From: Ylistrum balloti
Lineage: Eukaryota
Length of the DNA stretch: 64,000 bases
NCBI RefSeq assembly: GCF_031769215.1
Contig: NW_026782013.1
Coordinates: 310,001 to 374,000, forward strand
Direction: 5' to 3'
Part shown: one piece after another, positions 21,601-27,800 of the stretch
Position numbering within the stretch: position 1 is the first letter of the stretch
Layout of the letters: each line of letters opens with the position of its first letter
Program-made: the position numbers and the translations under genes
Notes under the pieces: generated by a model
Database searches by the model: none
Told to the model about the DNA's origin: nothing
The model's input: only the letters and a program-made list of their open reading frames with translations

Positions 21601-23699
21601 NNNNNNNNNNNNNNNNNNNNNNNNNNNNNNNNNNNNNNNNNNNNNNNNNNNNNNNNNNNNNNNNNNNNNNNNNNNNNNNNNNNNNNNNNNNNNTACTTAC
21701 CGAGTTGTGCAAACTTGCATGTAGATATCACATCTACCTTTTAACGAATCACAATACATGTGTTCCGTGTCTTCATATTGCAACAAGTTGATTATCACCC
21801 ACGCCTTCGACGTCAATTTCTAAAAATTCATGTAATATTAAGTGTATAGATATACCCTACATCTAGCTATAACCTACATGTGTTTACATTTGATCGACGA
21901 TGTAACAAATATGGATCTGAAGCCGATTTTCATTTAAGGACAATCTCTCTTTTATATCTCGTGAAAACTTTGATGATACCTTAAATTCATATACACTCTG
22001 CGTTACAACAAATATATTTCAATGTGTGCTGAAGAAATCATGATTAAACCGTAAATGTATTTGATTGTTTACCTATAGCCTTATTAAAGGACTCTTCAGT
22101 ATGATTTTCAACTCCATACTTTAATAAAAATCGATCTAAATCACAACGTAGCGTAGCATTTTCGTGAGAAAACCATGTCTGGATTTCGACAAGCTAACAC
22201 ACCACCAAGAGCTCAAACCGTGTTTCGTTACAAGTCAAATCAAATAAGTTTAAATTGCAACATCAAATCGAAAAGCGAAACGGGGAGTTCAAATTAGAAT
22301 GAATCTTTGAGTATACATACACAAAAAAATGGCAAATAAAATCAATAAGATGTCGAACTCACACACACACACACCCTCACATAACTAAATAATTAAATAC
22401 ACAAAAACGAAACAAAAAAATAATTGTAACGGGGACAATTACATAAATTCCCCAAACTACCCCTTCTGTCGCAAATAAAATGCTTATTAAAATAAGAAAT
22501 AACTTTAATTCACAACTAAGCCTATCTACATTAGAGCAGAGTTCCTCGTCTCTGGTGCACATGCTTTACACCTGAGAGGCAGTTGTGCACGACACCGATA
22601 ATCTATGGCCAGTTAGCAATACCCTGGAAGACGACACTAGAAATACATAACATGAGTGATAGTATACCTATTAAGTGCTCGAGAGCCTCGACATTAACAA
22701 TTGACAATATCAAAGTTAAAACATCTGTGACGGCCATGTCTGTTATTCATTCTTTAAAAAAACTGATTGCACCACTGCTTTCCTTACATTAGACAAGACA
22801 TGCATCAATTTTCATAAAAATTCGGTACCAACAAATCTTCAGTGGCTGCGTCAGTCATCTTGGAATGTGGAAATATGACATGGTTATCACTGCAATCTAG
22901 TTTTCACTGTACAGTAAATCTTCTGAGTGTGATTTACATACTTCAATAATTTACTCATTTGGCTTATAAAAACGAAATACTTACCGATCCTATATCCGTG
23001 CTGCATTTTACCTGCAATTGTAATGAACAACAATTATTTCATTTTAATGACACAATCGATATAAATCTCGATGAAATGTTTGTTTTGATTTGAACTAGAA
23101 CTGTTGAATATTAAGAAACGATAAATAATCTACTTATTGCAATTTTCTCACTTTCCATGGATGCCAGTTTGAAGTCGATGTTCTGTATATAGCTGAAATG
23201 CGTGTTCTGCCGGAAATATTGTTTCATATTTAAGACAATGATTATCAACATATGAAATACTTAAATGATTAGATACAGAATGACTGGGATGAAAGCACTT
23301 TAATACAGTTCGCTTCCTACCATTTTATAGGGCTGTCTCAGTATGTCTACATTATTTAACGTTCCTAAAATTCCAAATGTATTCAGCAATAATTGATATT
23401 TTCACTGCAAATACAGCTATTTAATTTGACAGAAATGAGTGGAAATACGAAAACTTGTTATTTCACTGGAGTAAAATTATCACACCGCAGTGAAATATCA
23501 CTTTAATGTAAAACCTCATGTTTCACAGTGACAACTGTAATAGATTATTTTACGTCAACATTAAAAACAGGTTGAAATACCCTTCCACATTAATATAAAG
23601 TAACGTTACCTGTACATTACGTAGAATCCCTTGCAATAATAGTAACGTCATAAGATTAAACACTAAGTCCCTTGGACTTTTTTCGTATATACTCAACAT
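6673..23699 (-). CDS. DSL-family (Delta/Serrate-like) Notch-ligand-like membrane protein: SP, C2/MNNL-like, DSL, ~52 cbEGF, mucin, SEA-like, TM, tail
   Basis: Exons on the minus strand, 5' to 3': 23699-23610 (MLSIYEKSPRDLVFNLMTLLLLQGILRNVQ); 23011-22985 (VKCSTDIGS); 21819-21701 (KLTSKAWVIINLLQYEDTEHMYCDSLKGRCDIYMQVCTTR); 21249-21129 (KCTKK...NWYLERWSG); 20222-20080 (SFPLSVHIYDYDYLGSDDNLGTIKY...); 19642-19521 (LTFQITVKCLPRYFGPNCTTFCAENAHAHCDVNGSKICQHG); 17732-11498 (FTGDDC, EGF array, S/T/P stalk); 10707-10554; 9108-8946; 8366-8272 (TM ALVIGIVAGVVVVLAITTAVVLIRK); 6805-6673 (tail, TGA). All junctions are GT-AG with matching phases. The EGF exon contains frame breaks as assembled. The two 5'-most exons are the least certain. 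Confidence 0.85.
7060..7460 (-). mobile_element. Degenerate Penelope-like retroelement RT fragment
   Basis: The minus strand reads YLVDNIFVDFGGKIFQQT...SCEAEFIEEVIK, the same family as the fragment at 31.6-32.1 kb. Frameshifted; lies in the last intron of the DSL gene. Confidence 0.55.
11870..17710 (-). repeat. Coding tandem array of 111-bp (37-aa) Ca-binding EGF units, about 52 copies
   Basis: Unit [37 protein letters not shown]. Period 111 bp (e.g. CAGGGGTT at 12854 and 12965). Six-Cys EGF spacing with the N-I-D-D-C and C-x-D-x4-Y-x-C cbEGF consensus. Confidence 0.95.
21508..21693. other. Assembly gap (186 N) inside an intron of the DSL gene
   Basis: Run of N. The flanking exons (21701-21819 and 21129-21249) join in phase, so no coding exon is required in the gap. 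Confidence 0.95.
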
Positions 23700-24512
23700 A
23701 ATGTTTAAGTTTTCCTATCTTGACTGTCAGCCGTCCCGCTATTACATCTGTGATTGTGGTGTGATGTTCGGTAGTATGATAGTATATCTATACCCACGCT
23801 ATGTCTAAAAGATTAGGACAAACCAACACATGGATGGAGACCTGCTGTTCAGGTAGATACCTGTTAATTGGCAACAATGTAAGTCGGGTCAAGACAACAA
23901 ACAAATTAAAATACATTAAAAAATAGAAGTAAGAGCATAACTTTTCAAACAGGAATGGACAGAGTCATGTCTATCACATAAAACCACGAACGCTTGTTTG
24001 TAATACTTAATGTAGTCATAACAATTGCATAAAGATAACGACATAGGAGATACGTGAGTCAGTTTTTCACTAATATACAGTTTAAAAGTACCAATTAGTC
24101 CCGAGATTTCCTTGTTAAGTATGGCTAGTAATTACAGAAGTATACGGCCTTTTGTTAAGCTTCTTCATGCTGTTCTGTTATAATCACACTACTTTAATGA
24201 CTGAAAATATAGAGAAAAGTGACCACAAGAGAAGTCTGTCATATGGTCATACTCGCTATTCGGGCAACCCCGCAATTAAGACCATTTTTGTCCAGTCCCA
24301 AGGGTGGTCCTTATATTAAGATTTCAGCGAATGGAACAGTTTCACCGTTGCATCTAACTGGATTTTATATATTTAAAACATATCTAGTTGTACAATACAC
24401 CCTACTACTTTGCCTCCAGAATACCATTAGCGTGAATGATCGATTATTCGTCACGAACAAATTAAGTTGAAACTTCTGACAAACATAACCTTGGTTACAG
24501 TATCTAACAGGG

Positions 24513-24819: not shown

Positions 24820-27800
24820 ATGGCCCCAAAGGAACCAAAAGTCGCAGTAAGTATCAAATTTGATGTAAATAAGCTCTATGTAAATCATATGCGGATGAGA
24901 CGGAATAAATCTATTAACGGAATGAACAAACATAAAAAAACAATCTACAGTACCAACGGTACAATTAAACACCACAACACATTTTAGGGATACAACATAA
25001 ATACTAAACATAAAGAAAGGTATCCCTAATGTAAGAGAAGGATCTCTGAAACATACACGCGTCATTCTCAATCTTAGTTTTGCATTGCTTACATCATTGT
25101 TTTGAATAAGGAAAGTAATGTTAATGCTAAATTAAAAGCGAAACTATTAACGGATGTTTATACAGTAAGTATAAAAACTAAGGATAAAATCTTATAAGAT
25201 ATATATGGCTGTTCGTTCCTCTGTATATCAATATCAGGTACATATATATCTTACTCTGTTCATCTAAGGAACAATCCTCTCACAAGGTGATAGAAAAACG
25301 GAGGAGAGATAGGATCAACGCCTGTCTGTCGGAACTCAGCCAGACCGTACCAGCGGCCTTCTCCAAACAGGTAAGACTGTTATACTATTAAACTGGTAGT
25401 CAAAACTAAAGAGATAGTTATCGTTACACTGTCCAAAAAAAAGACAATGCCACACCACCATACTGATATACGTAATCAATATCACATCATCATACAGGTA
25501 GTCAATATCACATCATCATACAGGTAGTCAATATCACACCATACAGGTAGTCAATATCACACCATCATACAGAGTCAATATCACATCATACAGGTAGTCA
25601 ATATCACATCATCATACAGATAGTCAATATCACACCATCATACAGGTAGTCAATATCACACCATCATACAGGTAGTCAATATCACACCATCATACAGGTA
25701 GTCAATATCACACCATCATACAGGTAGTCAATATCACATCATCATACAGGTAGTCAATATCACATCATCATACAGGTAGTCAATATCACATCATCATACA
25801 GGTAGTCAATATCACACCATCATACAGATAGTCAATATCACACCATACAGGAAGTCAATATCACATCATCATACAGATAGTCAATATCACACCATACAGG
25901 AAGTCAATATCACATCATCATACAGGTAGTCAATATCACACCATACATGTAGTCAATATCACACCATCATACAGGTAGTCAATATCACATCATCATACAG
26001 GTAGTCAATATCACACCATACAGGAAGTCAATATCACATCATCATACAGGTAGTCAATATCACATCATCATACAGGTAGTCAATATCACACCATCATACA
26101 GGTAGTCAATATCACACCATCATACAGGTAGTCAATATCACACCATCATACAGGTAGTCAATATCACATCATACAGGTAGTCAATATCACACCATACAGG
26201 AAGTCAATATCACATCATCATACAGGTAGTCAATATCACACCATCATACAGGTAGTCAATATCACACCATCATACAGGTAGTCAATATCACACCATCATA
26301 CAGGTAGTCAATATCACATCATACAGGTAGTCAATATCACACCATACAGGAAGTCAATATCACATCATCATACAGGTAGTCAATATCACACCATCATACA
26401 GGTAGTCAATATCACACCATCATACAGGTAGTCAATATCACATCATACAGGTAGTCAATATCACACCTTCATACAGGTAGTCATTCACACCATCATACAA
26501 ATAAAGGTAAGGTGTTATATTTTTGCAGCACAAATGCATCAAAATGAAGCAACATCACACTGATAACAATGTTTGCATCAAAGATTATTTATCATAATAC
26601 CTGTCAAACAAAATCATTCAACCAAACACGTTCCTGTGTACTCACGGTCCACGTAAGTATAGTTACCGTACCAACTACATACACAGGCCACACACAAACA
26701 GTAATTTATTTTCAATGAAAGCAAGTGTCTAAAGCTGTTTCATTAATATATATGCTGAGTCTCAGTCGATATTTGTTAATATAACATTTAGCAATCGCTA
26801 CGAAAGGGTGATATTTAGACACAAACTTGTGCAAACACACTTTACTTAATATAAGCACTTGATCAGAAATTGTTTGTTTCTAGAGCGCTGGCAAACTAGA
26901 AAAGGCCGAGATTCTAGAGATGACTGTGGAGTACTTGCGAGCGGTCCAGACAACAGAGATAGGTACTCGATTCGATCATGGTAGGTAGTTTACAAAACGA
27001 TGTCATGTGGCTTCCCATTTTTCTCTTACTTAAGGGACACTTAATAATGTGTTATCAGGTTACATAAAATGATACAGTGTGTCACTATGAATGATATTAT
27101 CTAACGTATATCTAAAGGGTATAGTCCACAAAATATATAGATAGTATAAAGTAAAAGTAGACGATTAAGCAAGACAAAGTACGTCTAAACTAGAAAACGA
27201 GACATGTAATGACGTCAACACACAGTATCCGTACATCTGTTGTCAGGGATGTGTTTATACCGACATTTCATTTAATCACCGGCTTATACAAATGCTCTAT
27301 ACTCGACATAGCTCCTGAGTGAATTTCATCATGGCTTGTCATACAAATGAAATTAAATTGATCCAATGACATATATAATAAAACGGTACCCATAATACCC
27401 TCTGACTGCCATTGCCGTGTCATATTATAAAGGGATTTTTTTTATAATAATCATTATTTCAATTCATTATTTGTCTCTGCTGTACCTGGTTCTAAGGTGC
27501 TATTCACTTGTGTGTCTTTGGAATAATATTCCGTGTTGTTTTGGTAGAACTTTGTTGAATAGTTTGCAGAATAACCTTATCGTTCTTATTTCTATGGACT
27601 TCAAAATTTACGTAAAAGTACACTGCGACAGTTCATGCATGAATGACCCGAGGTACCCACTCAGCAGACAAAACAATTACTATTTCTCGACATCTAAATC
27701 GTGAATTGACCATGCCTAGTGCGACAGTTGCTTGTTATTTCATTCCGCACGTGACCTAAGAAAGAAGCATTAGATTTTCGCGTGCTGTGTGCGTGGACAG

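Follow-up and report, generated by a model that had tools for sequence, protein, structure and literature searches.

Can a gene for a Delta-like surface protein and a gene for a Hes-family repressor, placed head-to-head, share one promoter and form a signalling circuit? The question is raised by a 64,000-nt stretch of the genome of the scallop Ylistrum balloti (NCBI RefSeq assembly GCF_031769215.1, contig NW_026782013.1, positions 310,001-374,000; hereafter the window, in whose positions all coordinates are given unless another locus is named), in which a gene with a DSL domain (the DSL gene) stands beside the gene for HELT, a basic helix-loop-helix (bHLH)-Orange protein. An earlier note on this DNA had suggested that the two genes, on one bidirectional promoter between their start codons, could form a ligand/repressor signalling or feedback module. 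Our results indicate that the arrangement is real and is kept in four scallop genera, and they do not support the shared promoter or the feedback module. We consider it probable that the locus holds two independent divergent genes, each with its own proximal TATA-type promoter, and that their pairing is a lineage-specific neighbourhood.

Gene models and conservation across scallops agree on the head-to-head orientation that had been noted, with the HELT ATG at 24820 (+) and the DSL ATG at 23699 (-). The distance between the two ATGs in Ylistrum (24820-23699) is 1121 bp, as originally reported. The junction is not a misassembly, because a 2582-nt contig from an independent public run covers positions 22925-25505 and bridges both first exons. 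This contig differs from the window by 16 single-nucleotide polymorphisms and is a second haplotype or individual. All 16 substitutions lie within 22925-24049, and none was seen in 24050-25433, a stretch of 1.4 kb with the HELT promoter and exons 1 and 2. No description of a DSL-HELT linkage was found in literature searches; the published survey of lophotrochozoan Notch components contains no synteny analysis (PMC8166818).

Conservation within the interval falls into two separate blocks, one proximal to the DSL gene and the other to HELT, each with its own TATA-like box. The DSL-proximal block (23700-23815, minus strand) is alignable over about 115 bp in three species and holds the TATA-like element ATAGATATA (23783-23791, minus strand), 84-92 bp upstream of the DSL ATG. 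This block probably represents the core promoter of the DSL gene itself. The HELT promoter block is a conserved non-coding segment of 334 bp (24437-24770, plus strand) with sharp edges: pairwise identity among the four scallop genera is 89-93%, with 81% of the columns invariant, and falls to 28-40% in the upstream flank and to 37-53% in the 5′ leader. A TATA box, TATATAG (24707-24713, plus strand), is embedded there in the invariant GTATATAGGTGGC, and the conserved TCACAGATTG about 30 bp downstream of it putatively marks the region of the HELT transcription start site (TSS). The two blocks are separated by a spacer of about 600 bp (23830-24436) for which blastn returned no match in other scallops; identity in 24300-24436 is only 28-40% across scallops, and 24185-24341 is taken up by a dispersed repeat, of which the genome has at least 40 copies. 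The only N-box match of the interval falls inside this repeat. No Su(H)/RBPJ site (YGTGRGAA) was found in 23700-24819 in Ylistrum, and the one site detected in Mizuhopecten, at -81, is not conserved. Scans of 23400-25000 for Rfam families and tRNAs gave no match.

The HELT block carries four E-boxes of class B/C within 24513-24677 (CGCGTG at 24513, CACGTG at 24533, CGCGTG at 24567 and CACGTG at 24672), whose positions are kept in all four scallops. Thus packed in 165 bp are 4 of the 14 CACG[C/T]G sites of the 64-kb window, and the HELT locus as a whole accounts for 10 of the 14. Five further CACG[C/T]G boxes form another cluster in the last HELT intron (27748-27908); the spacing of these boxes, 31/31/11/82, is identical in Pecten, and the last intron of Patella has a similar cluster. 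About 800 bp around the intronic cluster (27534-28326) are 77-81% identical in the three other scallops, a level equal to that of the coding exons. Upstream clusters were present at all ten molluscan HELT loci analyzed, from bivalves, a limpet and a chiton, where 4-6 CACG[C/T]G boxes precede the ATG by about 120-480 bp; Pinctada, with a different annotated start, has them at -612 to -789. A distance of 20-22 bp typically separates the first two boxes across molluscs, and in no species did more than 7 of 2000 dinucleotide-preserving shuffles of the same segment reach the observed number of boxes. At the DNA level, searches with the HELT block found no significant match outside scallops, as expected at such distance. 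Since comparable clusters occur in molluscs without a DSL neighbour, the HELT E-box block predates the pairing.

To follow the linkage across molluscs, we searched the flanks of HELT, 10 kb to either side, in nine species besides Ylistrum. Upstream of HELT, on the opposite strand, exons of the DSL gene are found in Pecten, Mizuhopecten and, in part, Argopecten. In contrast to these scallops, Saccostrea, Pinctada, Mytilus, Solemya, Patella and Liolophura showed no DSL or EGF exon within 10 kb of HELT, either in the annotation or by tblastn with the scallop exons at E-values up to 10. The Mytilus locus is that of a second Mytilus HELT protein (P0016, GCA_011752425.2). The upstream neighbour of HELT is a saposin gene in Saccostrea, a WD40/PROPPIN gene in Patella and PCNA in Liolophura, and none is present in Pinctada, Mytilus and Solemya. 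By the microsynteny check suggested in the earlier note, the retention of the pair in four scallop genera counts in favour of that proposal; the lack of the linkage in the six other molluscs, over 10 kb to either side, counts against it. As it was seen in scallops only among the species examined, the pairing is a feature of the scallop lineage. The downstream neighbour of HELT, RBM22 (37701-42220, minus strand), lies tail-to-tail with it in the window. RBM22 is common to Ylistrum, Pinctada and Patella, and its presence beside HELT in the latter two indicates that synteny is ancient on the 3′ side of HELT but not on the 5′ side. Within the Ylistrum genome we found eight Orange-domain loci, and the HELT locus is the only one that shares a contig with a DSL match.

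The spacing of the two genes varies as well. Exon 1 of the DSL gene was found in three species, in which the ATG-to-ATG distance is 1121 bp (Ylistrum), 1369 bp (Pecten) and 2314 bp (Mizuhopecten), with candidate TATA elements about 916, 1160 and 2107 bp apart, respectively. The DSL-HELT spacing is therefore not constrained. Known bidirectional promoters, such as those of zebrafish her1/her7 and human PLAGL2/POFUT1, resemble the scallop locus in that divergent transcription starts from a short interval, but there it issues from one compact common region (PMC6642334). The scallop pair has instead two blocks of TATA type, separated by unconserved sequence and a repeat over a distance that ranges from 0.9 to 2.1 kb among species. 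Divergent orientation is thus present, whereas a shared conserved regulatory region is not, and the proposal of one bidirectional promoter is not borne out by an interval in which two conserved blocks flank an unconserved, repeat-bearing spacer and the HELT block is the older element.

We also evaluated the families to which the two gene products belong. HELT is encoded by four exons on the plus strand: exon 1 (24820-24846; 27 nt, 9 codons, donor GTAAGT), exon 2 (25269-25370; basic region and helix 1), exon 3 (26884-26980; helix 2) and exon 4 (28453-28940; Orange domain, a C-terminal tail lacking WRPW/YRPW, and the stop codon). Spliced together they give exactly the 237-amino-acid RefSeq protein XP_060065628.1 ('hairy and enhancer of split-related protein helt-like [Ylistrum balloti]'). 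Pfam HLH matched exons 2 and 3 with 33.8 and 22.8 bits, and Hairy_orange gave 36.4 bits against a cut-off of 25.3, with the Orange domain C-terminal to the bHLH. These Pfam matches, together with best matches that are HELT proteins, place the gene in the bHLH-Orange (group E) family, as had been proposed. All non-scallop matches at E<1e-27 are HELT or HELT-like, bar a few automatically named Hey-like, and the best ones outside molluscs are HELT proteins of nemerteans, annelids, hemichordates and vertebrates; by these matches the gene is an ortholog of HELT rather than of Hes or Hey. As in vertebrate HELT, the scallop bHLH carries the invariant SHKVIEKRRRDRIN and GKLEKAEILEMTV stretches, and the basic region is invariant. 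The protein also shares with HELT (Heslike/Megane) an Orange domain and the lack of a WRPW/YRPW tail, whereas its C-terminal half is lineage-specific. The WRPW/YRPW tetrapeptide was absent from all 15 aligned HELT proteins, and those of scallops terminate in LPYFR(G/E)K. A side feature of the gene is a long tandem array with a 26-bp unit in intron 2 (25480-26440, plus strand). Depth along the contig from the public run rises there about 7- to 10-fold, from around 9 to 66-92, so that the unit is a common satellite of the Ylistrum genome.

That HELT should be an output of Notch is a weak premise. In the mouse, HELT confers GABAergic fate and has not been documented as a target of Notch (PMC4439124, PMC1950541); according to a review, Helt lacks WRPW/YRPW and no evidence points to its Notch-dependent expression (PMC1950541), and the tetrapeptide is missing in the scallop protein too.

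The DSL gene, in turn, is an unusual member of its family. In canonical ligands the conserved FCRPRxD..GH loop of the DSL domain faces the receptor, and the structural literature on Jagged-1 gives it a role in Notch binding. A six-frame scan of the Ylistrum genome with the Pfam DSL profile returned three strong matches (74-77 bits), presumably Delta1, Delta2 and Jagged, several intermediate ones, and the HELT-adjacent gene at about 30 bits. Its DSL exon aligns from the first residue with the canonical Delta/Jagged DSL exons of Ylistrum. All three canonical genes have the FCRPRND..GHY loop, whereas the HELT-adjacent gene reads FCAENAHAHC; in this gene, in its tandem paralog and in the Pecten ortholog the loop is four residues shorter and the R-P-R-x-D residues are missing from it. 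The gene does resemble molluscan Delta1, Delta2 and Jagged in the order of its parts, namely a signal peptide, a putatively C2-like N-terminus, the DSL domain, EGF repeats and a single transmembrane segment (PMC8166818). It departs from these canonical Notch ligands in the strength of its DSL match (29 bits vs. 74-77 bits), in the lack of the RPRxD loop and in an EGF array that is hugely expanded in Ylistrum, the Pecten ortholog having only about 8 repeats. Pfam MNNL did not match the separate exons of the gene, single exons rather than the spliced protein having been scanned. Exons 2-4 have no counterpart at the other DSL loci of the Ylistrum genome, and exon 3 occurs in exactly two copies in that genome, in the HELT-adjacent gene and in the tandem paralog. 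The paralog (C156:306400-309450, locus L009), encoded on the same strand directly left of the window, shares the N-terminal exons of the gene at 46-74% identity, and its EGF region, of normal size, is a single intact open frame of about 800 amino acids. Expansion of the DSL family in bivalves, with tandem duplication, has already been described (PMC8166818). As judged from sequence comparison, this is a divergent Delta-like family member that is specific to scallops and duplicated in tandem.

These results bear on the explanation closest to the original proposal, by which the 1.1-kb interval is a single regulatory unit where HELT bound to the E-boxes represses or co-regulates the DSL gene, a scallop-specific feedback module. 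The head-to-head pair is indeed kept in four genera, 814-978 bp separate the E-box cluster from the DSL ATG, the core promoters predicted in Ylistrum are about 0.9 kb apart and the DSL gene is under purifying selection, all of which would suit such a unit. It is difficult to reconcile, however, with two separate conserved blocks and an unconserved, repeat-bearing spacer that varies from 0.9 to 2.1 kb by species, or with a HELT block that predates the pairing. In addition, HELT lacks the Groucho-recruiting WRPW/YRPW tail, the DSL loop of canonical ligands is missing, the interval has no Su(H) site, and no evidence presents HELT as a Notch output (PMC1950541). We regard a shared unit as unlikely. 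The ligand/repressor feedback module is likewise not supported, given the lack of a Su(H) site, a HELT for which the literature gives no evidence of Notch dependence, a DSL domain without the RPRxD loop and a linkage not found within 10 kb of HELT in the non-scallop species.

Equally improbable is that the DSL gene starts elsewhere than at 23699, or that the HELT-adjacent copy is decaying, in which case the 1.1-kb distance would have no regulatory meaning. The gene model itself gives material for both sides. Exon 1 (23611-23699, minus strand; 89 nt) is signal-peptide-like and ends in the donor CAG|GTAACG. Its ATG at 23699 (-) is the first in-frame ATG downstream of a stop, and ATG, frame and donor are kept in Pecten maximus (L001, ATG at 8632) and Mizuhopecten yessoensis (L002, ATG at 7687), as is the upstream block with the TATA-like element, so that conservation in three genera speaks against a different start. 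The start at 23699 is predicted from this conservation. Whereas exon 1 can be recognised in Pecten and Mizuhopecten, the search for it in Argopecten found nothing, which would suit the alternative. The following exons, all on the minus strand, are exon 2 (21700-21819), an N-terminal cysteine-bearing part whose donor lies just before a run of unread bases (21508-21693); exon 3 (21129-21249), the most conserved of the N-terminal exons; exon 4 (20080-20222), a C2-like core with DYDxxGSDD, on which Pfam C2 matched weakly and below the cut-off (E=0.03-0.04); and exon 5 (19521-19642), with the DSL domain. PF01414 (DSL) scored 28.8-29.2 bits on exon 5 against a cut-off of 24.2, covering profile positions 1-35/39 of 46, and the remainder of the domain runs into the next exon. 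Further along, on the same strand, lie the EGF-repeat array (11496-17748; 6.2 kb of 111-bp units with EGF, hEGF and EGF_DL_JAG matches), another conserved exon (10490-10762) and an exon with a hydrophobic stretch that we read from the sequence as transmembrane (8199-8471). Splice phases are consistent at all junctions.

The N-terminal exons of the DSL gene are conserved in Pecten maximus, Mizuhopecten yessoensis and partly in Argopecten irradians. Across 124-162 codons, the ratio of non-synonymous to synonymous substitution (dN/dS) is 0.09-0.14; splice sites are intact, and synonymous sites are near saturation (proportion of synonymous differences, 0.64-0.71). Such dN/dS values indicate that the gene is under purifying selection, contrary to what decay would predict. 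On the side of decay or of a wrong start, the records of Pecten, Mizuhopecten and Argopecten have no called gene over the N-terminal exons, and a profile of exon 3 run against 1.84 billion representative proteins retrieved a 131-amino-acid ENA fragment and one spurious repeat protein only; the subfamily seems to be missing from public gene models. The Ylistrum EGF array, as assembled, is not one open frame either, as it holds three frameshifts and several garbled units. Its 111-nt period is broken by units of 109, 138, 132, 129, 206 and 121 nt, where the sequence is scrambled and locally duplicated. The garbled units look like consensus errors in otherwise near-identical repeats, with real decay as the alternative, and the EGF exon of Pecten is intact, with an open frame of 403 amino acids and about 8 repeats followed by a Ser/Thr-rich stalk. 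Downstream of the eight EGF repeats, Pecten has a long region of Ser/Thr-rich, mucin-like tandem repeats (L001:732-1907, minus strand). The only gene called there in Pecten, of 271 amino acids, has its start within the mucin-like repeats and leaves out the DSL and EGF portion.

What controls HELT itself can be approached through its E-boxes, the clusters of which suggest an ancient auto-regulatory or clock control. In the mouse, the repressor HELT recognises E-boxes of class B and C1 as a homodimer (PMC4439124); for E(spl) the optimal site is tggCACGTGcca, and Hes1 represses its own gene through clustered sites (PMC1950541). Because HELT and E(spl) proteins bind such sites and clusters of this kind mediate Hes1 autorepression, auto- or cross-repression of HELT would be the most economical explanation. 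The mouse Hes1 promoter, with its clustered N/E-boxes, and the HELT block are alike in that sites for the gene's own protein class stand just upstream of a TATA box, in a strongly conserved arrangement (PMC1950541). They differ in that the scallop sites are class B/C E-boxes and not N-boxes, and in that the HELT block lacks paired Su(H) sites and HELT binding to it is putative. A further reading, which we hold to be somewhat less probable than either explanation weighed above, is that in the scallop lineage a divergent Delta-like gene was captured beside the ancient auto-regulatory E-box promoter of HELT and now stands under the same cluster, so that HELT would set the level of the DSL protein. 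The least probable alternative, which concerns the mechanism of the HELT block only, is a circadian array under CLOCK:BMAL-type activators, with HELT acting in a Clockwork-orange-like manner: Helt-like is among the most strongly rhythmic putative clock genes in the sea anemone Nematostella (PMC10188108) and the boxes are mostly perfect CACGTG in clusters kept across molluscan classes, yet several are CACGCG (class C), typical sites of bHLH-Orange proteins.

The favoured reading, two divergent genes with separate promoters, can be put as follows. HELT would have an ancient, self-contained regulatory unit consisting of the 334-bp block, with four E-boxes upstream of the TATA box, and of the cluster in the last intron. 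Since HELT-type and Hes/Hey-type repressors bind such sites, negative auto- or cross-regulation by bHLH-Orange proteins at the E-boxes would be its most likely logic, with clock-type bHLH-PAS proteins as an alternative input to the CACGTG boxes. The DSL gene may have arrived beside HELT in the scallop lineage and then stayed, with a promoter block of its own, while the spacer between the blocks would evolve freely. The data show the gene models, the pattern of conservation, the motif clusters, the distribution among taxa and the purifying selection on the DSL gene; the TSS positions, the factor that binds the E-boxes and the independent expression of the two genes we infer from these patterns.

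Several points weigh against this reading. The two local TSSs, the independent expression of the genes and the expression of DSL exon 1 are predictions. Bidirectional promoters are commonly defined by divergent TSSs less than about 1 kb apart, and the TATA-to-TATA distance in Ylistrum, about 0.9 kb, is inside this usual operational limit. At 0.8-1.0 kb from the DSL start, the E-box cluster could act on both genes. The persistence of the pair in four genera, among which synonymous sites approach saturation, is in keeping with a degree of constraint, and the synteny test in non-scallop species spans only 10 kb per side of HELT.

If the two genes were truly co-regulated, the locus would be a rare case of cis-wiring of a signalling-type surface protein with a Hes-family repressor, and control of the DSL gene by HELT would make it a lineage-specific, hard-wired ligand/repressor circuit. 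The evidence favours an ordinary divergent pair confined to scallops, which spares follow-up effort. The useful outcomes are a scallop-specific, selectively maintained DSL subfamily, apparently missing from public gene models, and an extremely conserved 334-bp block in the HELT promoter. The deeply conserved E-box cluster of HELT is a more notable by-product than the gene pairing, and, being kept in bivalves, in a limpet and in a chiton, it opens auto-regulation or clock control of this gene to direct tests in molluscs.

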